64,000 nt of DNA. Origin: Bugula neritina (taxonomy: Eukaryota > Animalia > Bryozoa). How positions within the stretch are numbered: position 1 is the stretch's first letter; every line of letters begins with the position of its first letter. The translations under genes were made by a program, and so were the position numbers. Location of the stretch: the NCBI GenBank assembly GCA_964035545.1, contig OZ037766.1, positions 4,144,722-4,208,721 of the forward strand. Direction: 5' to 3'. The notes under the pieces were generated by a model that saw nothing but the letters and a program-made list of their open reading frames with translations, was not told the DNA's origin and searched no databases. Shown piece by piece: positions 50,867 through 64,000 of the stretch.

Positions 50867-51215
50867 TGTGATAAACTTGTGGGTTGAATGTAACTTAGTG
50901 CAGAACAAGATAGGTTGAAGTAGTAGAGTTCCAAATGTTTATTATAGTATAAAAATAATGTCAACTTGTCTAGGCGAGCTCCAGTAGTAGACTGGCTTAA
51001 CACCGTAACTCGCCTGCTTTTATATACAGCGAACAAAAGAACATAAAACAAAGAATCTTTTGTGTGTGTGGCCCGAAGTTCGGTAGCTCCGAAATTCGGC
51101 AGGCCCGAAGATCGGGGGAACCGATCTTCGGTCAAGCCGAAACTCGGAACTCCGAATTTCGGACCCCAATTAACATTATTGAACAAAAGAACAAACCAAG
51201 GCATAATCTATCACA
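50867..51215 (-). repeat. 3' LTR
   Basis: Direct repeat of 58310-58658; minus-strand TATATAAAA at 51018-51026 and AATAAA at 50938-50943. Confidence 0.97.
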
Positions 51216-51248
51216 CACACCCCCTATCGGAAAGCATGCTTTCCGATA
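51216..51248 (-). other. Polypurine tract with an overlapping perfect 24-bp palindrome
   Basis: Minus strand GATAGGGGGTGTG directly before the 3' LTR; TATCGGAAAGCATGCTTTCCGATA at 51225-51248. Confidence 0.75.
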
Positions 51249-51424
51249 CGAGGGCGAATAATAACATAATAACAATGAGACAGACAATAAACAAAACAAA
51301 AAAAAGAAACAGAAGAGAGAGAACAAAGAAACAAAACAAAACAAAACACCAAGTACATAGTATAAGGGACAACGAATATGTATAACAGAGAATTGTCATG
51401 CCACCAGTCAGGGAGAGGCGGGTC

Positions 51425-54400
51425 TCACTCCCTCCATGTCCCATCGTCGTTGTCGGTCTGACGTCGTTCCAGCCGGATCAGTCGTCGTCGCAATTGTGTC
51501 AGATCTTCCTCACACCGTGCCACGCGGCGCCGTAAGTGGCGCACCTCCTCTTCTAGTTGCGGTCGGGAGCGGAGTGTGTTGCGCTCCGGGTGTTGTCTGT
51601 GCTCTGGGTGGTGTCTGCTTGCCGCCGAGGAGCGGGGGTCCAGGTCCGATGTACCGGGTCTGGCACCATCCCCGACCCTTGTCAGCATGACCCGAAGAGG
51701 CTGGGTGGCTGCTGGTTGGAGGGCGGCGGCGGGTTCTCCGTCTTCTTCTTGAATTGCTCTGCACGCCGGAAACCCTTGGCCGAGGGTGGCACGCTTGTGG
51801 GGGTCCGCGACGTGCGGCAGGATGAGGTCCCGGAACTCCGGAAATGTGGCCTGATCCACGGTGAACACGTGACCTGGGTGGCAGCGCGAGATGCGCTGGT
51901 GGCGCAGCACATAATCCCGCTGGTAGGAGTATTCGCCGCAAGGGCAGAATACGTTGATGAAATGTTGTGGGGCGTGAACACGCAACCGCCGGGAGGAGGA
52001 GAATTTCCTCCGACATTGCCGGCAGATGCGGTTGCCCGCTGCCCCGCATGCTTCACTAATCTTCTGATTAGTGTCGCGAGAGACCCAGGACTGGCGGGCG
52101 ACCAGTGCCTGGGGTAGAGCCAAGGTGGGGGTGTCACCGTCTTCAGCTCGAGTAGAGGAGGGCACACCGCATAGTATTCCCTGTTCCTCCCCGGCGGCTA
52201 ATTGTAGCTCAACTGGGTTGGCGACAGGGTCACTATTCATGGTGGATAGCACCTCAGTCCGGTCTGTGGCGACCCGCGGGCTGCAAGGAGCCGTCACGGG
52301 GGCTGGTGGAGGGGGGGAGTCGACTCGACTGACCTCCACCTCATCACACTCCATTGCAGTGTCTACAATAGACAGCAGAGGCCGAGTAAGGCCGGTCTCG
52401 CCGTCGCCGAAATTCGGCATCGCCTTATAGGGTACTTTGTGGGTGGTAGGGAGCCGAGGTGAGTCATGGAGAGTGACTGACCCTATGTCCTGGTCTAATA
52501 AAAACTCATTTAGAGAGTCTTCTCCAAAACTCACATCGACTTCCTCCGTTAATAAATTAGATTCTAACAAATCTAAACTAGCCCAATTAATTACAGTTGA
52601 GTCAGACTCCGGTACGGGAGGCTCTGACTCTAATGAAATACCTGTGTTTGTAGTGTTGTTACCGGGAAGAGTAATACCCATATCCAATTCGTGATTAATT
52701 CGATTACAAGTTTCAGCTTTAAAATTGCGTGTTACTAGTGGGTTAGTAGTAGTGCAAATGGCCGAGCCTCGTGTTTCAATATTTTTACCTGCTACGCGAT
52801 CGTGGGGAATTCCCATCGAGTTTTGAAGGGACAACTCAGACAATCGCGTGCCCTCCGAATTTCGGTTTGCAACTGTTCCTTTTTGTAGTGATTCTCCAGG
52901 AGGTTGGAAGAATTTACTAACTAAGGAGGAGTAATGGCCCTGGACAGATGGATTCCCACTTGGGGGGGGCAACCCTAGGTGTCCTATGTGATAGTCTGCC
53001 AGATATCTGGGTGGTTTCCTCGCTCGCTGGCTCCTTTCCAGCGGTGTGGGTGCTGGTGGTGCCAGTTGCTCCTCAGTTGCCACCGTAGGGGGGTCCCCGC
53101 CTTCACCCGTAATACGGGTGGGGGTGTCCTCCCCCCAGAGGGGTGGTGGCTCTGGGGCGTGTTGCTGCTGCTGCTCCTGCCTCTGTTGTTGTTCCAACTG
53201 TTCTCGTAGGGCAGCCTGCTCCTGCTCTGCCTCCCTTCGGATGACAATTTCCACCTCCCGGGGCCGGGTGGCTCTCCCCCGCTGGTTAGGCTGGCGGTTG
53301 GGCTCCAGGAGGGGTGGAGCCTGACCCACCGCGTCTGGGCTGGCATGGTATGGTTTCAGGCGCTGTTCGCTCTGGACTGAGACCTGTCCAGAGCGCTCCA
53401 CACGGTATGTGTGGTTGGCCAGCACCTCCACCACGCAGTAGGGACCCACGAACTTGGGCTGAAGTTTAGCCGACTGTCCGCGTCGCCTACGATAGCTCAC
53501 CATCCAGACCCAGTCTCCCACCTGATACAATGGGGGCTCTTCTGAGTCCTCTGTGCGGATCTGCCACTGCTGGGCCCGCAGTGCATCATGGGCTTTACCC
53601 ATGATCTCTGTCAGTCTTTCGACGTACTCATGTACCGGCGATTCGGGGGCGGGAACGTGGTATGTCAGGTGTTCCGGAACCCGCGTTTCCCGGCCTAGCA
53701 TCAGGAAGTTTGGGGTCTCCTGTGTGGTGGAGTGTGGTGTGCTGCGGTAAGCCCGCATGATTTGTGGCAGCACCACGTCCCATTCTTCCTGACCTCGACC
53801 AAGGAGCAGGCTCCTGAGGGCGTCACCCAACATCCTGTTGTTCCGCTCGACGACTCCGTTCCCTTGTGGGTGATATGGGGTGGTCCGACTCTGGTTCACC
53901 CCCCATATCCGGCAGAGGTCTCCCATGAGCTGGGACTGGAACTGGGCGCCCTGGTCCGTATGTATCTGCTCGGGCAAACCGAGGTAACAGAACACATGTT
54001 GGTCCAGGGTCCGGGCCACCGTGGGGGCAGTTGCGTCTGGGATAGCCAGAGCATCCGCCCACCGGGTAAAGTGGTCCGTGAGCACCAGTATCCAGGTGTT
54101 CCCTCTGGCGGATAACGGCATAGGCCCGACAAGGTCTACCGCCACTACTTGCCACGGTCGACCAGCGTACAGCCGGCGTCGACCAGTGGTTTCCGTGGGG
54201 CGGCCATGCTTGCTAGCTTGGCAGACCTCGCATTGCCGTACCCGCAGTCGTACGTCCCGAGTCATTCCGGGCCAATACCAACGCAGCCGCAGACACCTGA
54301 TGACCCGACTGACTCCAGAATGAGCCTGCTTATGGGTGTCCCAGATCAGTTCCCGTCGGAGGGCGCGTGGACAGACGACGCGGTCCCTCTCCTGCTGACG

Positions 54401-57382
54401 GTTGTCTGCTGCTAACGTTATCATCAGGAGGCCATCAGGACTGACCTTGAGGGCATCCCAGCGACGACAGAGGAGTTGGAACTCAACGTCTCCCTGCCGC
54501 TGCTGTTCCTCGCTAGGTCGTCGGCCCTCCTTCTTGGCCCGGAAAATGTCCGCTACCGGGCCGGGTAGCGTCTCCTGGAGTCGGCACAGCTCCTTGACAT
54601 TCTGGTACAGAGTGGGGTTGGCGTGAAGCGCCTGGACGTCGTCTGAGTGGGTTTCGGTCCGAAGATGGCCGTGCTCCCACCGATAGACGGCGCCCTCCCC
54701 TAACTCTGTTTCCACGTCAAGGCGAGCGGGTCCCCCGTCCCGTTTTTCAATGTGCAGGCATTGCTTACAGTCCTCTACCGGCCGGCGGCTCATGCCGTCG
54801 GCGTTTCCGTGCTTCCGGCCAGCACGGTGTTCTATCCGGTAAGAGAACTCGGCAAGAATCTCTAGCCAACGAGCTACCTGGCTCGAGGGCTCCGCACGTT
54901 TACACAGCCATATCAGTGATGCATGGTCTGTTCGCAAACGGAACGTTCTCCCATACAGATATGGCCGAAAGTGTTTGACCGCCTTGACTACTGCTAGGAG
55001 TTCCTTCCTAGTGGTGCAGTAGTTCTTCTCGGCGGCCGCGAGAGTCTTGCTGTAGTAAGCCACGACCACCTCACTTCCACCCTGGACTTGAGACAGGACA
55101 GCTCCCACGCTGTGGTCACTGGCGTCGGTGTCCAGGATGTACTCCTTGGCTGGATCAGGATACGCCAGAATTGGCGCCTCCATTAGCCGTTGCTTGAGGT
55201 GGTCGAATGCCTGCTGCTCCTCCTGCGTCCACTGCCACCGGACCCCTTTTGCGGTCAGCCGATTTAACGGCTGAGCCACTCCTGCGAAGCCAGGTATGTA
55301 CTGCCGGTAGTACCCTACTAGGCCCAAGAATGCGCGCAACTCAGGGAGGTCACGGGGGACAGTCCACTGCTTCACAGCCTGTACCTTCTCTGGGTCGGTA
55401 GCGACCCCATCACGGCCCACCACATGGCCCAGGTACGTGACTTCCGGCTGCAAGAGTGCACACTTGGAGGGCTTCAGCTTGAGTCCAGCTGCCCGGAGGC
55501 GGTCAAAGACCTCCCGCAGACGACTGACATGAGTCGAAAAGTCTGGCGAGATGACAATGACGTCGTCCAGATAGATGAGGAGGGTCTTCCAGTGTAATCC
55601 ACTGAGGACCTGCTCCATGAGCCGTTGGAAAGTTGCCGGGGCGGACGTTAGTCCAAATGGCAGTACTTTCCACTTCCAGAGCCCGTCGCGAGTAATGAAT
55701 GCTGCTTTGTCCTGGGCATCAGGACTGAGAGGCACTTGCCAGTACCCGCTAAGCAGATCCAAAGTACTGAAGTACTTGCTACCCGCGAGGGCATCCAGAG
55801 ACTCATCTATCCGTGGGAGAGGGTAGGCGTCTTGGATGGTAACGCTGTTGAGTCTGCGGTAGTCCACACAGAACCTCCAGCTACCATCTTTCTTCTTGAC
55901 CAGGACTACTGGAGAGCTCCACGCACCGTGGGCAGGCTCAATCAGATCCCGGTCGAGAAGATCCTGTACCTGTCGGCTCACCTCCTTCTCCTTCTCCGGG
56001 CCTAGACGCCGGGTAGGCTGCCTGATGGGAGTGGTGCCGGCTGCCAGGGGTATCTCGTGGGAGATGACCTTGGTCAGCCCCATGTCTCTATCTCCACGAC
56101 TGAAGACATCACTGTACTCCGCAAGTAGTTGAGCCAGTACTTGGCGTTCAGTACTACTTGTACAGTTTCCACACGCCCCATCATACAGGTCAGCCATATG
56201 CTCCGGGACTGCTCCTCGTCTGGTGTGAGGGGGGTTCCCCTGGGTGTCGGCCACTGTCTCCAGTGCCGGACCCACATCCGCTTCCTGAATGGAGTGGTAC
56301 TTCCCCACCAGCGCTCCAGCCGATAATCGGACAGGTTCCGTGAAGGGGTTGATGCACTGCACGAGGAGCTCCTGCCGACAATCTAGCCGATTCAGGCTGT
56401 TTGCTAGTCGGATCGCTCCGTGCGTTCCCTCAACCACCCCCAGGCCGGCGATCCCCTTGCAGTTGACTCTGCAGCGAAGAGTCGCCTGGGATCTTCCCGG
56501 AACCGTGCAGTCCCGCACTACCTGGACTCCGCCCACCAAGGGCCTTCCGAACTTGTCGACGCAGACAAGCTCCTTCCCAGCCATCACCACCACTGACTTC
56601 TGGAAATCCATGTGACACTGGTGTTTCTCCAGAAACGGCATTCCCAGGATGGCGTCCTCCTTCAGCTGGCTGACTATGAACGTCTCGTGAATTGCTTGAT
56701 CACGGACGCGTCCAGGTAGTGAAATGACGCCGTAGAAAGGAATGCATGATCCGTCCGCCAACGTACCATGCGCACCTTCATACGGCTCGAGGCTCGCCCG
56801 CTCTCGTGCACCAAGAGTGTCAAAGAGACGCCTACTCAGCAGGTTGGTAGTGCACCCAGTATCCAGTAGGAATGTGGCAGCTTTACCCGAAATCTTTCCG
56901 GGCAGAAAGTAGCTGCTTCCATACGGCTGGGCGCTCCTGGAGCGGTCAGTCTCTGGGGGAGACACAACTTGGGTCCGCACAGCGGGCCTCCTCTTTGTCT
57001 TAGAGACAACGGGGGTTTTCTGAGGTCGGGAGGGTAGCTTGGGGTACTCTTGCGAGTAAGCTGAATCCTCCTCCACAACCTCCTCGGGCAACCCCGCGAA
57101 CCGGTTCTGGAGTGGCCAGGCCGGAGGATCGGGTAGACCTTGCGGTCTCCGAGATCTCCGAGGTGCCTGCCATCCTGCTTCTTCTAGCTGCATCCGGGTC
57201 TCGAGTGACACGGCCGGAGGATCGGGTAGACCTTGCGGTCTCCGAGGTCTCCGTGGCCTCTGCCACTCGGTATCGGCAGACCCTGTGGAGGTCTCTTCTT
57301 CTCCTCTTCGAGTCCTATCCCGGATGGGATTGGCGTGAGGCCCACGGTTGGCGGAAGTTACCGTGAGCCTTGGGTGTTTAAA
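51425..57382 (-). CDS. pol: Gypsy pol (protease, RT, RNase H, integrase) with an about 520-aa C-terminal extension (acidic region, C2H2 zinc fingers, coiled coil); entered by -1 frameshift
   Basis: LLDTGC (protease); LPFGL and YLDD (RT); DTDASD, NYCTTRKELLA, TDH (RNase H); H-x3-H...CEVC, VDLVG, HTDQG, NGVVER, GPY (integrase). The frame is open from the slippery site at 57382 to the stop at 51425. Confidence 0.96.
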   Translation of the reverse strand, partial: FKHPRLTVTSANRGPHANPIRDRTRRGEEETSTGSADTEWQRPRRPRRPQGLPDPPAVSLETRMQLEEAGWQAPRRSRRPQGLPDPPAWPLQNRFAGLPEEVVEEDSAYSQEYPKLPSRPQKTPVVSKTKRRPAVRTQVVSPPETDRSRSAQPYGSSYFLPGKISGKAATFLLDTGCTTNLLSRRLFDTLGARERASLEPYEGAHGTLADGSCIPFYGVISLPGRVRDQAIHETFIVSQLKEDAILGMPFLEKHQCHMDFQKSVVVMAGKELVCVDKFGRPLVGGVQVVRDCTVPGRSQATLRCRVNCKGIAGLGVVEGTHGAIRLANSLNRLDCRQELLVQCINPFTEPVRLSAGALVGKYHSIQEADVGPALETVADTQGNPPHTRRGAVPEHMADLYDGACGNCTSSTERQVLAQLLAEYSDVFSRGDRDMGLTKVISHEIPLAAGTTPIRQPTRRLGPEKEKEVSRQVQDLLDRDLIEPAHGAWSSPVVLVKKKDGSWRFCVDYRRLNSVTIQDAYPLPRIDESLDALAGSKYFSTLDLLSGYWQVPLSPDAQDKAAFITRDGLWKWKVLPFGLTSAPATFQRLMEQVLSGLHWKTLLIYLDDVIVISPDFSTHVSRLREVFDRLRAAGLKLKPSKCALLQPEVTYLGHVVGRDGVATDPEKVQAVKQWTVPRDLPELRAFLGLVGYYRQYIPGFAGVAQPLNRLTAKGVRWQWTQEEQQAFDHLKQRLMEAPILAYPDPAKEYILDTDASDHSVGAVLSQVQGGSEVVVAYYSKTLAAAEKNYCTTRKELLAVVKAVKHFRPYLYGRTFRLRTDHASLIWLCKRAEPSSQVARWLEILAEFSYRIEHRAGRKHGNADGMSRRPVEDCKQCLHIEKRDGGPARLDVETELGEGAVYRWEHGHLRTETHSDDVQALHANPTLYQNVKELCRLQETLPGPVADIFRAKKEGRRPSEEQQRQGDVEFQLLCRRWDALKVSPDGLLMITLAADNRQQERDRVVCPRALRRELIWDTHKQAHSGVSRVIRCLRLRWYWPGMTRDVRLRVRQCEVCQASKHGRPTETTGRRRLYAGRPWQVVAVDLVGPMPLSARGNTWILVLTDHFTRWADALAIPDATAPTVARTLDQHVFCYLGLPEQIHTDQGAQFQSQLMGDLCRIWGVNQSRTTPYHPQGNGVVERNNRMLGDALRSLLLGRGQEEWDVVLPQIMRAYRSTPHSTTQETPNFLMLGRETRVPEHLTYHVPAPESPVHEYVERLTEIMGKAHDALRAQQWQIRTEDSEEPPLYQVGDWVWMVSYRRRRGQSAKLQPKFVGPYCVVEVLANHTYRVERSGQVSVQSEQRLKPYHASPDAVGQAPPLLEPNRQPNQRGRATRPREVEIVIRREAEQEQAALREQLEQQQRQEQQQQHAPEPPPLWGEDTPTRITGEGGDPPTVATEEQLAPPAPTPLERSQRARKPPRYLADYHIGHLGLPPPSGNPSVQGHYSSLVSKFFQPPGESLQKGTVANRNSEGTRLSELSLQNSMGIPHDRVAGKNIETRGSAICTTTNPLVTRNFKAETCNRINHELDMGITLPGNNTTNTGISLESEPPVPESDSTVINWASLDLLESNLLTEEVDVSFGEDSLNEFLLDQDIGSVTLHDSPRLPTTHKVPYKAMPNFGDGETGLTRPLLSIVDTAMECDEVEVSRVDSPPPPAPVTAPCSPRVATDRTEVLSTMNSDPVANPVELQLAAGEEQGILCGVPSSTRAEDGDTPTLALPQALVARQSWVSRDTNQKISEACGAAGNRICRQCRRKFSSSRRLRVHAPQHFINVFCPCGEYSYQRDYVLRHQRISRCHPGHVFTVDQATFPEFRDLILPHVADPHKRATLGQGFPACRAIQEEDGEPAAALQPAATQPLRVMLTRVGDGARPGTSDLDPRSSAASRHHPEHRQHPERNTLRSRPQLEEEVRHLRRRVARCEEDLTQLRRRLIRLERRQTDNDDGTWRE
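57339..57382 (-). promoter_or_regulatory. Programmed -1 ribosomal frameshift signal (U UUA AAC plus 10-bp stem-loop)
   Basis: Gag frame ccT TTA AAC (57376-57382), 6-nt spacer, then stem GGCUCACGGU/ACCGUGGGCC (57339-57369) containing the gag UAA; pol is in the -1 frame and open from here. Confidence 0.88.
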
Positions 57383-58263
57383 GGCCCTTGGCCTCTAGGG
57401 CAGTGCCTCCTCACATGCCCTTGCACCCCGCACCCCCAACAGGTTAGTAGAGATGGGCGGACAGGGTTGTCCCGTGAACGGGGAGCCCGCCTATCCGCCT
57501 GTTCGCTCTGCAACTTCGTCACTGTAGCCTGCAGGCCTTTCATCATGTCCATTAACATGGTGAGCTGCGTCTGCTCGAGTGATTTAGTTGCTGCGGCCGC
57601 TACTTGGGGTTTAGCAGGCAGGGCGGTCTCCTCATCGACCACCTGGCGGGCGGCGAATCTTGGTCCTTGAAGCTCTTCTACCTGGAAATAGGCTTTACCC
57701 GTTTCCAGAGCTTCGTCCAGGCTGCCCACCTTGCCAGCCATCCAATAGCGTTGGAGGTCAGGATGATTTATACTCCGGAAAAACGCGTTGTACACCAGGC
57801 GCTGTCTTTCCGTTCCGGTAGCCTGGCTGAAAGCAGCCTGGGCCAAGCGTTCCACCACGTTGGCGTGGTCCTCCAATGATGTCCTCCTGTCCCTTCTCAG
57901 GGCCTGTAGGCGGTCAGACGCCTCCTCTGACGTCATGCCAAACCTGGCCCTTAGGGCACGTAAGATGTGTGCTTCATCGGGCCCCAGAGCGAAACTCTTG
58001 GCCCGGCCTGTCAAACAGGCCCGGAGTTGGAGGACGCGCACCGGCACTGGCCATTCAGCGATGGTGGCCACGTCCTGGAACTCCCGGATGAATTGCTCCA
58101 CATCCCCATCACCTCCAAAAGTTGGGGGACTGAGGCGGTACCTGTCACCAGGTGGCGCCTGCCCTGTCCCCTGCAACTTTCGGAGGGCTGTCACCAAAGC
58201 CTCCACAGTGAGGGTTGGTGTCGCGGCTGCTCCAGGGGTTGCCTCCTCACCCCCTGGAGCCAT
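57358..58263 (-). CDS. gag: Gypsy gag (capsid-like region plus CCHC zinc knuckle), 301 aa
   Basis: PPTFGGDGDVEQFIREF...W...LTGRA...LRARFG capsid-like signature; CWGCGVQGHVRRHC knuckle. Confidence 0.94.
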   Translation of the reverse strand: MAPGGEEATPGAAATPTLTVEALVTALRKLQGTGQAPPGDRYRLSPPTFGGDGDVEQFIREFQDVATIAEWPVPVRVLQLRACLTGRAKSFALGPDEAHILRALRARFGMTSEEASDRLQALRRDRRTSLEDHANVVERLAQAAFSQATGTERQRLVYNAFFRSINHPDLQRYWMAGKVGSLDEALETGKAYFQVEELQGPRFAARQVVDEETALPAKPQVAAAATKSLEQTQLTMLMDMMKGLQATVTKLQSEQADRRAPRSRDNPVRPSLLTCWGCGVQGHVRRHCPRGQGPLNTQGSR

Positions 58264-58288: not shown

Positions 58289-58308
58289 GAATCCCACCGC
58301 TGCCACCA
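58289..58308 (-). other. Primer binding site complementary to the 3' end of tRNA-Leu
   Basis: Minus strand TGGTGGCAGCGGTGGGATTC, 1 nt after the 5' LTR; complementary to ...GAATCCCACCGCTGCCACCA, the 3' end of metazoan tRNA-Leu(AAG/TAG) as recalled. Confidence 0.9.
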
Positions 58309-58309
58309 A

Positions 58310-58658
58310 TGTGATAAACTTGTGGGTTGAATGTAACTTAGTGCAGAACAAGATAGGTTGAAGTAGTAGAGTTCCAAATGTTTATTATAGTATAAAAATA
58401 ATGTCAACTTGTCTAGGCGAGCTCCAGTAGTAGACTGGCTTAACACCGTAACTCGCCTGCTTTTATATACAGCGAACAAAAGAACATAAAACAAAGAATC
58501 TTTTGTGTGTGTGGCCCGAAGTTCGGTAGCTCCGAAATTCGGCAGGCCCGAAGATCGGGGGAACCGATCTTCGGTCAAGCCGAAACTCGGAACTCCGAAT
58601 TTCGGACCCCAATTAACATTATTGAACAAAAGAACAAACCAAGGCATAATCTATCACA
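58310..58658 (-). repeat. 5' LTR
   Basis: Identical to 50867-51215; adjoins the PBS. Confidence 0.97.
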
Positions 58659-59689
58659 ATATATTCAGTATAGATCTAGATGTTGAAAGTATTAAAAATT
58701 CTATTGAATACCAATATAAAGAATTAAACCCAATCAACATGATAATCACTAACAGAGTCAATGAAATTCTCATTTTTAGTCTAAGAATAAAAATAAACTT
58801 TGGTATGGGAGTAAATCTCAATGACATTTAGTCACAGTGAGTAAATTACTGTGTTTGATTTCAATAAAATATATGATTTGATTAATAATTTAATTAAATG
58901 AATGAGATAATCACCATAGTTAGTATTCATTAAACAACTCATTTAAAGTAAGTGACTGTTAAATCACTTATAAAATAGTAGCATGCTGTATCATGTTAGT
59001 GTATGGAGATATTTTTATTTTCTATTGTTTCTTATAATTTTTTGCAATAACTTTCGTAAATATGCTAGCTGCATTCTAGATAACAGTACTACAGGGGGAG
59101 GGGGAGGGAGGGGGCAAAGAACTTTTAAGAAATTGACATATTATGCTTCAGTTTAATTTTTTAACCAGCATTAGAATGATAAATCTAGAAGTGAATTAGC
59201 TAAATCTGTGTTTTTTACTATAAAACTTATATAAAGTTAGTGTTGTTTTAGCTCACTGCATATTGATTTTAATATGTTGCAATGAAACATATTGTTTACT
59301 AATTTTATTGAATAAAAGACTTCTTTGACTAAGAAATGCTGCAGCATTTTTTATTTAATATACTTTCAAGTAAATGGGAAGTATTTACTAATACATGATA
59401 AAAATTATGTGCAAATATTTGTCAATAAAGGGAAGAAATAAATTGCTTTAAAGTTTTTAATGCTAAATACAAATGGTATTTTGCTTACAACAGATGAAAT
59501 TTCTTTTGGATTCTGCATAAACCAACTTTAGTAATTTATGTACTCATAGCTCTGAACAACTTATACTTTTATAAAACAGTTGATTCTGGTGTTGTTGGGC
59601 CTCAAGTTTGCGTTTGCAATTTGTAAATTACTCTTTAAATAGATTGATGATCAGGTATTGGAAGTTAATGGTTTAACGCTGTGAGGGTA

Positions 59690-62600
59690 ATGGAAGGGGA
59701 TAGTAAGATAGTAAATCATTCAGAAGAGCCTAATGCTGATGAAGAGCCAAGTGTGCCTACCACCCCACTGCCAAGGTCAGCAGTTATCGTATTCTTTTGA
59801 AGATATATCTCTTTTGGTTTTAACTATTAAAATTTCTTTTTTCACTTTTATGGATGGCAAAATTTGTCAGCTGATAAATCTAATTTTTATTTGAACTTTT
59901 TTCAATAACATAATTTGCAGTAAATATTGTAAGATTTTCTATAAAATTTATAGCAGTTTTTTTAACATTTTATCATAAACTAATTTGAGTGCTTTAGATA
60001 GTTTTGCATAATTTAATTTTTTGTTCTCCAAGCTGCCAATATATTTCCATTATTATATCACTGTTGATTTGTAGCATTTTGTCCAAAAATCTTCATTCAC
60101 TCAATCTCTTTACTTACTCATTCTATTCACTCTCTCTTTTTCTTTATTCACTTACTCACTCAATCAGTCACTCGGTCACTGTTTACTCATTCACTCACTA
60201 ACTCACTCACTAACTCACTCACTCATTAACTCACTCACTCACCCACTTACTCACTCACTGACTTTATTCACTCACTCACTAACTCACTCACCCACTCACT
60301 CATTCACTTCACTCACTTACTCACTCACTCACTCACTCACTCACTCACTCACTCACTCACTCACTCACTCACTCACTCACTCACTCACTCACTCACTCAC
60401 TCACTCACTTACTTAACTATACCTGCTCTATATACTATACCCGACGTCTGCAGGTCAGAGAGTCAGTTGAGTCAGAGTCAGGCAAGTGAAGTAGAAGAAA
60501 GTAAACACTCATCTGCTGGTAGACCTAGTAGTACTAAGTCACCTGGTTCAAGAAACGCTAGTGTTACCAGCTTTGTTACTGTTTCCTCAGCTGGTAGGAA
60601 ATCACGGGCTAAAAGTGCCGCTAGCACTCCTGATGTTCCAGAAACTCACCAGGTTACTTTTACTGTGACTGTGTCAGCAGCCGTGCCAGCAGGTAAATTT
60701 ATACACTGGGATTTGTAATTTAAACAAGAAATCTTGTGTAGTTAGTGAAATTGTTGTGCTCAGGTCACTATGAAACAAATTTTGGAAAATAGAGCAGTAT
60801 TCCGAAGGCCTATTGCTCCGAAGGCCGATTGCTCCGAAGGCCCATTGCTCCGAACGCCTGTTGGTCCGAAAATGAGTAGAGTTATTTGTTGTTTGTTATA
60901 TTTTGCACAAATCTCAACTGAAACCCCGTGTTTATATCTTCTAGAAAGAATTGTGGAAAATACTCAGATGTAAGTGCTGTGAAATATTTATATGCAAAAT
61001 GTATTTCTCTATTCAACTCTTGCAGATAAAAATCCTCCTAAAAGGATGTTTGACCGTAGCTATTATAAAGGCGAGCGCTCAGTCATGTTTTCTGGGATAG
61101 ATTCTAAGCATGGTGCTCTATGTTTACTCACTTGAAGTTTCTTCTAATGTTCCATTAATTCTGTTATGTTGTGTTGCGTTGCATTTAACTATCACTGTAG
61201 TATCTTGTATGTATTTGAGTATTACAATTATATAACCATGTTCTGATGTTGGTCATTCTGTGTGTACTGTTACACGTCTACATAATTCGCCACTTCTTTA
61301 TTATTATTTACATGATATTCTAAATTGTATGTATTTAAATTTAGCCAATGCAAGGTCTACAAAGAGTAGATATAGTTCGACGCATTTATATTATTTAGTG
61401 TAGGGTTTTTTATTGTTAACAACTGCTATTGAAGGATGAGAAAATATAAGTGTATTCATAAATTATATTAATGTTTATATATTAGATCAAATTAAAATTT
61501 AGTATATTATATTTTCAAGTGGTATATTTTCAAGTATTTTTTGCATGTTACACTTGACCATTTGTAGTGTACTGATTTTTTTTAGAAACACTCTGTGAAT
61601 AAAATATTTAATTTTGATCTTTAGTGTATGATGAAGAAGGCGACAAGAACAAAAGTAAACGAGTCGTCAGTGATCCTAAGCCTCAGGCGTTTTATCACAT
61701 TGAATATTTTCTGCTGCCTACTGACGTCGACCCTAACAAAACTGATATTACCTTGTTTGGAATAGCTGCTAAGATATACCCTGAGAAGCAAGATGCTAAG
61801 GTGATGAAGACGTGGACAGAAGGAAACAAAACATGGATAGCCTGGGCTCAGAGGTTTGTATATTTGTTGGATTGCTAAGCTTTAAGGCTGCTTTACATCT
61901 TTTTGTCATTTGCTATTAGTCTAAATTTTATTATATATTTATTTACAGCATTTTTTAAGTCTTTCTGCAGAGTTGTCTGTTCAAATTTCTTTTGCAACTA
62001 TTGCTAATTATCATCAATTGCGTGAATGCGCTTTTGTCACCAAGTAATGACATTATACTAAGAAGAATAAAATATGCCTAGTTTGCTTTGAACTGACAGG
62101 TATAAGAATATATAACCTTTTTTAGCATGCTTATAAAACATTTTATTAAAGTTTTTTTATTAAATTTACAGAAATTGATTTATGCAGATCTAGAATATGT
62201 GAGAAAAGTCTGAGTTTCAGATGACTTGCCCTTGTCACAGTGCCTGCTTGTTCTGCAAGTAGCAAGTTGTTTAATGCAGTTCATCTTATTCTATTAACTC
62301 TTTTAGTCACGTTGTAAATCTGACAAGCGATATGCTGAAAAAGCTCTGCTACCATAAGCTTGTTGTAAGAATTTGGGACACGCGAGACAAGTTTGGGCCA
62401 AAGGCTAGATTTGATAGACCGAGAGCTTTCAAGTTTCCGCAACAAAAACCAGGTTCACTAGAGATAGAATAAAAACTAATGATTATTACCTGTACATTTT
62501 ATTTTAGCAATAAACTCATGATTACCTAGAGTAATGAAGTTGCTGCATTCACACCAATGAAAACATGTTTATCTAAATTTGCATGCAGGTGAAGACTTGG

Positions 62601-64000
62601 ATGATATCAGTGGTGTGAAGACGTTTATCTCAAGGATGTGCAAAGCTTACACAAGACGACTCCCAAAGAACTCATATGAGAGAGCATTGCCTCAGCCTGT
62701 GGTCACGGAGAGCAAGTCTAAAGGTATGACAACTCCTTCGTCACCACGAGAGAAAATACTGTTATACTGTATTTGTACTTGTGCATTAATAATTACTAGG
62801 AGTTATGTTTCCTTGCTTATATTGATGATGGATCTCATTACCTTCATTTATCTCAAAGATAATCATGCTACTGATTTTTAAAAACAAAATTATTTTTTGA
62901 ACCTCAATTTACCTAATATTCAGGGACAAGTTACAGTTAACCAGTAAGACAAATTATCCGGACATCATTAGCAACGTTCCAATCTACAATATTATGTGGA
63001 GGATATGCATATTATGTTTCTTGCTATACATTTGTATTACCACCTTTCTTTCTCATCGTAGCTAAGCTAGCCGACTCTGAATTTACCCAGAATGCCGGGT
63101 TACCCGGAGTGGCAGCACATCCTGTGGAGTTCCGGGATGCTGACGAAGTTCCTTGCTTGCTTCTCGGACACCCGGATATGGAGTACAAGTGAGTCTTCTT
63201 TCCCTTTCTTAGCGCTACTACTACTACTACTACTGCTACTACTACTACTGCTACTACTACCGCTACTACTACTACTCTAATAATGACAGGGTTACTTAAC
63301 TTGATTTGACTAAGTTTTGGGGATCAGTTGTGATTGGTTCATAAGTAGTTAATTCTCTATTGCTTAGCAACATCAGGTATTATGTAGACCTTTGACGCAG
63401 TGATAAACTAGTATCTAAATTTTTCCTAGATGGCAGGTTTTTAATATGTAAATTTACAGTCTGTATTTAATTTTTATACATATTTATCAACTATAAGGAA
63501 AAGTGAAGATTTGTCTTGTAAATCTAGCTAATTTGTGTGAATTGTAATTATGTTTTCGATATATCACTGCTGGTACCAGTTTGTACTTTCTCTGCATGCT
63601 TGGTTTTTAACAAAAATATTAGATTTAAACTTATAAGCCTAATGCTATTTAGTTAGTTACTATTACTAAATTTTACTTTTTTCTCAAAAACATTATTCTA
63701 AAACTAAATTAGATTTTACTGTAATACTTTTTATAATGATTTCTATTTACAAGTAAAGAATAGGTGAGAGTAAATGACTGGTTTGATTGGCTACAATGGC
63801 TTGCAGGGGCAACTTAAGCTATTTGTATTTTAATCTTACAGAACTTATTCTAAGTTGGTTGAGTTGGCCAAGTTGGAGTCCCAGCACATAGGCAAAAGCT
63901 TACTGAGAAAGAACCTGCATGTAAACAGGAAGTCCCCGGATGGGGTGGCTGAACAGACAGATGAACGGAAGAAATCACCTACTAGTAGGCTTATTATGCA
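59690..64000 (+). CDS. CFAP92: Cilia- and flagella-associated protein 92-like (KIAA1257, DUF4550 domain), 5' part
   Basis: Exons at about 59690-59775, 60454-60692, 61625-61852, 62307-62452, 62589-62723, 63062-63188 and 63842-63984 splice in frame. HQVTFTVTVS; FYHIEYFLLP...KTWTEGNKTWIAW; LCYHKLVVRIWDTRDK match the recalled DUF4550/CFAP92 pattern. Start codon tentative. Confidence 0.82.
60130..60415. repeat. (CACT)n microsatellite
   Basis: Directly visible. Confidence 0.93.
60801..60870. repeat. 16-bp-period TCCGAAGG tandem repeat (5 copies), probably a DNA-transposon subterminal remnant
   Basis: TCCGAA at 60801, 60817, 60833, 60849 and 60865. Confidence 0.7.
63214..63277. repeat. (CTA)n microsatellite
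   Basis: Directly visible; accounts for the poly-Leu ORF tail. Confidence 0.92.

Follow-up and report, generated by a model that had tools for sequence, protein, structure and literature searches.

What six short palindromes, phased at a nearly constant period upstream of the TATA box of a retrotransposon LTR, do in the genome of the bryozoan Bugula neritina, and which protein, if any, would recognize them, is the question raised by the locus described here. The stretch of DNA that was analysed, referred to as the window, comprises 64,000 nucleotides (C2:4144722-4208721) of a genome of 216 Mb. A previous annotation made from the letters of this stretch (the sequence-only reading) took the array for a candidate response element whose features fit selection for binding by a dimeric protein, and named the zinc-finger/coiled-coil product of the same element as the obvious candidate for an autoregulatory loop.

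The insertion and its six-site array

The element carrying the array is an intact, very young Ty3/Gypsy insertion on the minus strand (Table 1). Its assignment follows from the LTR ends, a 4-bp target-site duplication (ATAT), the primer-binding site and the polypurine tract, together with the order protease - RT - RNase H - integrase in the pol product, in which the Pfam domains Asp_protease_2 (aa 104-193), RVT_1 (438-597), RT_RNaseH (686-789), Integrase_H2C2 (948-1002) and rve (1018-1115) were found. The element has a G+C content of 57%, against 34% in the host DNA, and belongs to a family (family A) with at least 12 full-length copies, six of which have LTRs identical to those of the window. 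Within the LTR, U3 probably occupies about positions 1-245 and R about positions 245-325. The long pol tail contains a finger/coil module, whose two finger-like motifs read C-x2-C-x12-H-x3-H (from aa 1730) and C-x-C-x12-H-x5-C-H, the latter being CCHC-like (from aa 1756). An A-rich (AAACA)n low-complexity tract (51289-51348) separates the pol stop from the polypurine tract.

The six CCGA-N3-TCGG palindromes of the 5' LTR start at 58516, 58532, 58548, 58564, 58580 and 58595, that is, at spacings of 16, 16, 16, 16 and 15 bp. The two units that do not have the full CCGAAnTTCGG form have one CCGAA half each, and an arm starts every 7-9 bp along the family A array. When the window was re-checked, the layout proved to be as the sequence-only reading had described it, including the coordinates and sequences of the array, its presence in both LTRs, the exact reverse complementarity of copies 3/4 and 2/6, and the occurrence of GAACAAAAGAACA on both flanks; the distance to TATATAAAA, given there as about 45 bp, was measured as 46 bp. 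Such an arrangement is not expected by chance, since shuffles predict 0.09 matches to CCGA-N3-TCGG for the window and 15 were found, every one of them within this single element (12 in the LTRs and three in coding sequence). Genome-wide, the phased two-site pattern was found 120 times, against none in the reversed control, and among the matches listed all phased pairs lie in LTRs of the same family group, with the exception of one unrelated locus (C1:91424).

Table 1. Features of the window element and of related loci (window positions unless a contig is given)
Feature	Position	Strand	Remarks
5' LTR	58310..58658	-	349 bp; TG...CA ends; terminal inverted repeat TGTGATA/TATCACA
3' LTR	50867..51215	-	100% identical to the 5' LTR over 349 bp
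Six-site array, U3 of 5' LTR	58516..58605	-	CCGAAnTTCGG full form in 4 of 6 units
Six-site array, U3 of 3' LTR	51073..51162	-	same six sites; transcribed into the 3' end of the genomic RNA
TATATAAAA box	58461..58469	-	46 bp downstream (sense) of the array; 3' LTR copy at 51018-51026
Proximal GAACAAAAGAACA 13-mer	58474..58486	-	distal copy at 58624-58636
AATAAA polyadenylation signal in LTR	58381..58386	-	read from the sequence
Primer-binding site TGGTGGCAGCGGTGGGAT	58291..58308	-	two bases past the 5' LTR; same site in families B and D
gag ORF	57358..58263	-	301 aa; CCHC knuckle at the end
pol ORF	51425..57211	-	1928 aa; protease, RT, RNase H, integrase, then a tail of ~640 aa
Internal site CCGAAATTCGG (sense)	52855..52865	-	pol tail; codons N-R-N-S-E, aa 1448-1452
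Internal site CCGAATTTCGG (sense)	52407..52417	-	codons P-N-F-G, aa 1599-1602
Double zinc-finger-like region of pol tail	51878..52024	-	aa 1730-1778
Arginine-rich C-terminal helix	51449..51559	-	coiled-coil-like heptads; aa ~1885-1921
Polypurine-like tract	51216..51225	-	adjoins the 3' LTR
Pol-tail exact sites, other locus	C1:8565020/8565471/8566015
Pol-tail exact sites, other locus	C1:11029367/11029851/11030413
Sister-family LTR blocks	C1:11023570-11023674 and 11031171-11031275		around module 11030139-11030813
Sister-family LTR blocks	C1:2715529-2715633 and 2723099-2723203
Sister-family LTR blocks	C1:24456295-24456399 and 24463891-24463995

LTR families and the constraint on the arms

The array was compared among relatives in an alignment of 25 distinct LTR sequences from 40 loci. 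Six sites are present in the LTRs of families A and B, which are 87-100% identical to the window LTR, four in a deletion derivative and two to four in the older family C, with a site spacing of 16 bp throughout the subfamilies with 2, 3, 4 or 6 sites. The LTRs of the three families have been recombined, so that the sole block common to all of them is the one that stretches from the proximal sites across TATATAAAA as far as the beginning of R. Family C has R/U5 and the TATA box as in family A, an unrelated distal U3 and only the proximal copy of GAACAAAAGAACA, while the 536-bp LTR of family B is composed of about 166 bp of C-like distal U3, the whole A-type U3 and a different R/U5. The family B element (L042, G000:C1:9753900-9761600), with LTRs that are 99.6% identical and an ATAT duplication, encodes an RT, an integrase and a gag product that are, respectively, 98, 97 and 80% identical to those of the window element, and is best read as a recent recombinant insertion with a chimeric LTR. 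Its LTR diverges about 50 bp past the TATA box, which fits a strand-transfer junction within R, so that the transcript would start shortly after the TATA box. The contigs of four RNA-labelled runs covered only the pol region 53260-57460 at 95-99% identity, and so come from relatives of the element, and neither a transcript start or end nor an LTR-related splice joint was found in them. An inverted repeat CCAGT...ACTGG (58416-58440) is located just downstream of the TATA box, at the presumed start of R, where family B has another sequence that is likewise palindromic.

With regard to the units themselves, the description of fixed arms with variable centres and spacers held when it was put into numbers. 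All 48 arm positions are alike across the six units (120/120 in pairwise comparisons), and pairwise identity is 40% in the centres (18/45) and 20% in the spacers (12/60). Uniform arms next to spacers only 20% alike are a pattern that a decaying tandem repeat could not yield. In a set of 14 distinct LTRs with six sites, variation common to at least two LTRs was observed at 1 of 48 arm positions as against 7 of 42 centre/spacer positions (Fisher p = 0.023), and the five arm changes present in these LTRs are all CpG transitions. Arm decay is also one-sided in old family C copies, from CpG to TpG or CpA. These data support the view of the array as a cis-element of U3 that lies upstream of the TATA box and is under selection.

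The CpG context of the array differs strongly from that of its surroundings: the observed/expected CpG ratio rises from 0.46 in the host DNA of the window through 0.76 in the element as a whole and 1.08 in its LTR to 1.6 in the array, where 12 of the 16 CpGs of the LTR are located. In the host DNA (window positions 1-50866 and 58659-64000) the CpG ratio of 0.46 is accompanied by a GpC ratio of 1.19, and this points to germline CpG methylation. The remark that binding to the array could be sensitive to methylation appears reasonable in view of the contrast between host and array ratios and of the loss of arms in old copies by CpG transitions only.

Half-sites in a sister family and in coding sequence

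Comparison with more distant relatives indicates that the core unit is probably the TTCGG/CCGAA half-site, and not the whole palindrome. Genome-wide, 351 blocks of the form TCGG-N4-TCGG-N4-CCGA-N4-CCGA were found, compared with 86 for the control, and the LTR pairs of a sister family, as listed for six elements of contig C1 with a module 67-69% identical to that of the window, are made of such blocks. Half-sites follow there an 8-bp phase, two direct and two inverted; the inner 4-mer is free, and the 4-mer preceding each TCGG on its 5' side is semi-conserved (CATT, CACT, TACT or TGTT in most cases), the semi-conserved 4-mers on the two sides not being kept complementary. For families of 39-77% module identity, our statements rest on coordinates and on the strings matched in pattern searches. 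The use by two related families of one half-site, at a spacing of about 8 bp and in different orientation syntaxes, favours recognition of single half-sites by multiple copies of a protein, and argues against an obligate dimer on one palindrome as well as against a conserved hairpin. Of the proposed selection for binding by a dimeric protein, the selection on the arms can therefore be retained; a strict dimer on each palindrome is not required, since the sister family uses the two-direct, two-inverted order.

Copies of the motif are also found within coding sequence. The exact form CCGAAnTTCGG occurs 402 times genome-wide, against 49 in the control, and besides the LTRs it is found at homologous places of the pol tail, about 750 and 285 nt before the module, in families with 56-100% module identity; some families have a further exact site 274 nt inside the module. 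In the window element, the internal sites at 52855 and 52407 are about 830 and 390 nt, respectively, upstream of the finger codons, and the homologue of the site at 52855-52865 is kept in families with 56-72% module identity. Among the C1 loci listed for the classes of 39-52% module identity, no exact CCGAAnTTCGG was found nearby. Pairs of internal sites separated by 461-490 nt were found 29 times, against none in the control, and the flanks show one reading frame in all of them. Changes of the centre base of the internal sites are non-synonymous (N/I, N/K) and leave the arms intact, and the residue following the first internal site can be E, V or G, yet the first base of its codon is always G. 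This suggests that the internal arms are under constraint at the nucleotide level. A third coding site, CCGATAATCGG, located at 56320-56330 in the coding stretch that separates the protease domain from RT, persists in families A and B and has decayed at its CpGs in family C; it may be a mere coding coincidence. The sites in coding sequence are the least expected part of our results, and a model in which the motif acts purely as an upstream promoter element leaves them unexplained.

Known LTR systems and candidate binders

The best parallel for this arrangement was found in plants. LTRs of Sireviruses have in their U3 region 8-32 copies of palindromic repeated motifs with a CGG-CCG core, which form a CpG island whose end lies about 37 bp ahead of a conserved TATA box; extra copies of the motif are located either before the env-like gene or where it begins, and there is an inverted repeat at the terminal polypurine tract (PMC2829016, Bousios et al. 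2010). In maize, the palindrome region of Sireviruses can form hairpins and is a hotspot of small RNAs, siRNAs included (PMC4728375, Bousios et al. 2016), where U3 repeat arrays of other families are also discussed. The motif of Osr9 contains TTCGG...CCGAA, and the function of the Sirevirus motif is itself also unproven (PMC2829016; PMC4728375). Both systems share dyad-symmetric motifs with a CpG core that are repeated in U3, a CpG-rich stretch that ends a short distance before the TATA box (37 bp there and 46 bp here), copies near an accessory gene (here those at 52855-52865 and 52407-52417), an inverted repeat at the polypurine tract, potential to form hairpins, and differences in motif sequence and copy number among families. 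On the other hand, Sireviruses are Ty1/copia elements of plants, whereas the bryozoan element is a Ty3/Gypsy one, with the integrase after RT/RNase H, and its motif is everted (CCG...CGG), follows a strict 16-bp period and has its internal copies within coding sequence. The likeness is one of architecture, not of descent or membership, and through it the window array adds a further case to a type of LTR cis-region that has already been described.

As to the inverted repeat at the polypurine tract, a perfect 24-bp palindrome (51225-51248) lies directly 5' of the tract in the window element and has TCGG/CCGA arms of its own. At the equivalent place, about 370-400 nt past the module stop, the elements of a more distant group bearing the same kind of module (the D-group, here L048-L070) have a stem in which CAGGAAG/CTTCCTG and CAGAAAG/CTTTCTG represent a paired change. 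The palindrome adjoining the tract looks like a conserved stem-loop.

Other LTR elements offer partial parallels. The Tax protein of HTLV-1 acts through 21-bp repeats, and the Tas protein of foamy viruses has sites both in U3 and in an internal promoter. As in those viruses, repeats are located here in U3 upstream of the TATA box, and the internal foamy-virus set before the accessory gene resembles our two internal sites; unlike there, array and module do not co-occur across relatives, and DNA binding and activation by the accessory protein are putative. Clusters of identical short sites for a host protein, variable in copy number, are also known from LTR retrotransposons, such as the Su(Hw) cluster of Drosophila gypsy and U3 repeat boxes like BII of Tnt1, and in this regard they are like the array. 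The gypsy cluster differs from it in its position in the 5' untranslated leader, its insulator role and its sites, which are not palindromic and have no CpG core. To our knowledge, neither the sites of HSF (GAAnnTTC), STAT (TTCnnnGAA), ETS (GGAA), IRF or NF-kB, nor those of papillomavirus E2 (ACCG-N4-CGGT) or the CGG pairs of fungal zinc-cluster proteins, fit the array in spacing and core at once. A literature search for the exact motif string returned only unrelated primers, oligonucleotides and constructs.

Taken as a whole, the comparisons establish a real and non-random array ahead of the TATA box, in which conservation is limited to the arms, the number of sites differs among relatives and CpG transitions are the sole form of decay. 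We consider it rather probable that it represents a promoter-upstream cluster of identical half-sites for a protein in U3, and that what it recruits is a host factor sooner than a product of the element. The six CCGAAnTTCGG-type palindromes, with their 16-bp period and their position 46 bp upstream of the TATA box, would be the upstream cis-regulatory block of the LTR promoter, at which several copies of a sequence-specific DNA-binding protein, probably encoded by the host, would raise or gate transcription of the element. Since there is a CpG in every half-site and the host genome is strongly depleted of CpG, methylation of the half-sites would probably switch binding off. The number of sites seems to have changed by gain and loss of units, with 2-4 in older subfamilies and 6 in young active ones.

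That the binder is instead the element's own pol tail, acting on the TTCGG half-sites of U3 and of the pol tail as a Tas-like transactivator that would also serve families B and C in trans, we hold to be unlikely. A canonical C-x2-C-x12-H-x3-H finger, a second CCHC-like finger, a terminal helix and a long linker could permit variable arrangements of half-sites; as far as listed, TTCGG half-sites, either in LTR arrays or as exact internal sites, occur only in families with 56-100% module identity; and the internal sites precede the finger codons and keep their arms in spite of non-synonymous changes at the centre. Confinement of the half-site to one subclade of modules is nevertheless explained equally well by shared descent. 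Moreover, the match of the tail fingers to Pfam zf-C2H2 is weak (E 0.19-0.46), even if the C2H2 spacing is there and the zinc ligands are invariant, and no homologue of tail residues 1400-1928 was found outside this genome at E <= 0.001. The module is very common in this genome: searches with an A and a D query each led to about 1000 candidates at first look and to no fewer than 150 scored loci, the modules being 38-100% identical to that of family A, fused to pol in some families and encoded in others by a separate ORF of 311-379 aa. Array and module are found apart in both directions, the two outcomes that the sequence-only reading had itself given as refuting its proposal. Family B, which has transposed recently, carries the array, but its tail departs from that of family A immediately ahead of the fingers, and the roughly 65 residues from there to its end are unrelated and contain neither Cys/His fingers nor coil; this C-terminal replacement is family C sequence, and family C (L043, L044) combines two or three sites with the same finger-less type of tail. 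Conversely, the D-group (30 loci) has a module whose identity is about 35-41% as a whole and about 50% in the finger region, and none of its 29 scorable 3' LTRs contains CCGA-N3-TCGG, with at most one TCGG/CCGA arm each, the thirtieth scoring solely through an inserted family C solo LTR. A and D agree in every zinc ligand, the RRLRVH of finger 1 is conserved except for an R-to-H change in L048, and finger 2 differs at few positions, so that the LTR motif differs where the putative recognition residues do not. Both the proposed binding of the array by the finger/coil protein and the expected co-variation of motif and recognition helix thus lose ground, as response element and activator appear, from these comparisons, neither to co-occur nor to co-vary among relatives. 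If the self-activating circuit were nonetheless true, bryozoan Gypsy elements would be 'complex' retrotransposons with a Tas-like loop, and the finger-less families B and C would be its parasites.

Two side observations concern the D-group. Its 3' LTRs (L048-L076, first 40 nt) begin with a conserved, CpG-rich inverted repeat of their own, GGACG...CGTCC around TAATACGCG, after which come a CCAAT-like box and a TGCGTCA-type motif, a different promoter vocabulary accompanying the same accessory module. The inserted solo LTR (L046, 8050-8535) is antisense and has three sites; it sits in the 3' LTR of a D-group element, close to the 5' end of that LTR, and this D-group element is itself inserted in the RT of another element.

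It could also be the case that the array acts as a nucleic-acid structure, either a hairpin of about 46 bp in the 3' genomic RNA or a DNA cruciform, with a role in RNA processing, export or packaging or as trigger and target of small-RNA silencing, the latter having been proposed for the palindromes of maize Sirevirus LTRs; to this reading we give quite a small chance. In keeping with the nested stems considered possible previously, the predicted fold of the whole array is a single long hairpin (-68.6 kcal/mol as RNA, with -34.6 in shuffles, z -8.9; z -8.7 as DNA), the array is 76-77% identical to its own reverse strand, sites 3 and 4 are an exact 11-bp inverted pair, and the hairpins and siRNAs of the Sirevirus region set a precedent. 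Folding of this kind is, however, largely a consequence of repeating a palindromic unit: any regular array of palindromes would fold likewise, so that the z-score is not independent, and a self-identity of about 70% is estimated from palindromy alone. A hand count in which the spacers paired in the hairpin (1 and 5) are invariant and the unpaired ones (2-4) vary (0/9 against 6/15 positions) lends it weak support. Across families A, B and C no compensatory two-sided arm change was found, only one-sided CpG transitions, and the spacers of three-site family C arrays are not complementary; in the sister family, the mismatches inside one LTR would be G-U on opposite strands. The A/T preference at centre positions 5 and 7 extends the half-site, but these bases would not pair in a 3-nt loop. 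An origin as a functionless by-product, be it a minisatellite or an inverted duplication made by template switching of RT, is very improbable. TRF detects a 16-bp period (2.9 copies, 73% matches) plus a 32-bp one, and unit number does differ among subfamilies. A metagenome scan for three phased sites gave 45 contigs, nearly all of them perfect 16-bp tandem repeats with the same arm pattern and none related to the LTR or pol. Yet spacers 20% alike next to 48 identical arm positions would be impossible for a tandem repeat decaying neutrally, the arms persist where the flanking U3 is unrelated, and the half-site recurs in the sister arrangement and in coding sequence. A plain tandem repeat was rejected on the disparity between arms and the remaining positions and on the low copy number and match rate given by TRF, and a captured DNA-transposon repeat, which had been considered as a source of the array, was rejected on the distribution of the listed phased pairs.

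Recruitment of a host factor to phased half-sites, the reading that we prefer, provides a promoter design open to testing, in which one 5-bp CpG half-site has been multiplied and set in phase, for a retrotransposon family that is active at present in the genome of a little-studied animal. The CpGs that are kept in active copies and lost in dead ones constitute a natural record tying the motif to methylation. Moreover, the fact that plant Ty1/copia and animal Ty3/Gypsy elements share this design suggests a convergent solution, and either system could inform the other.
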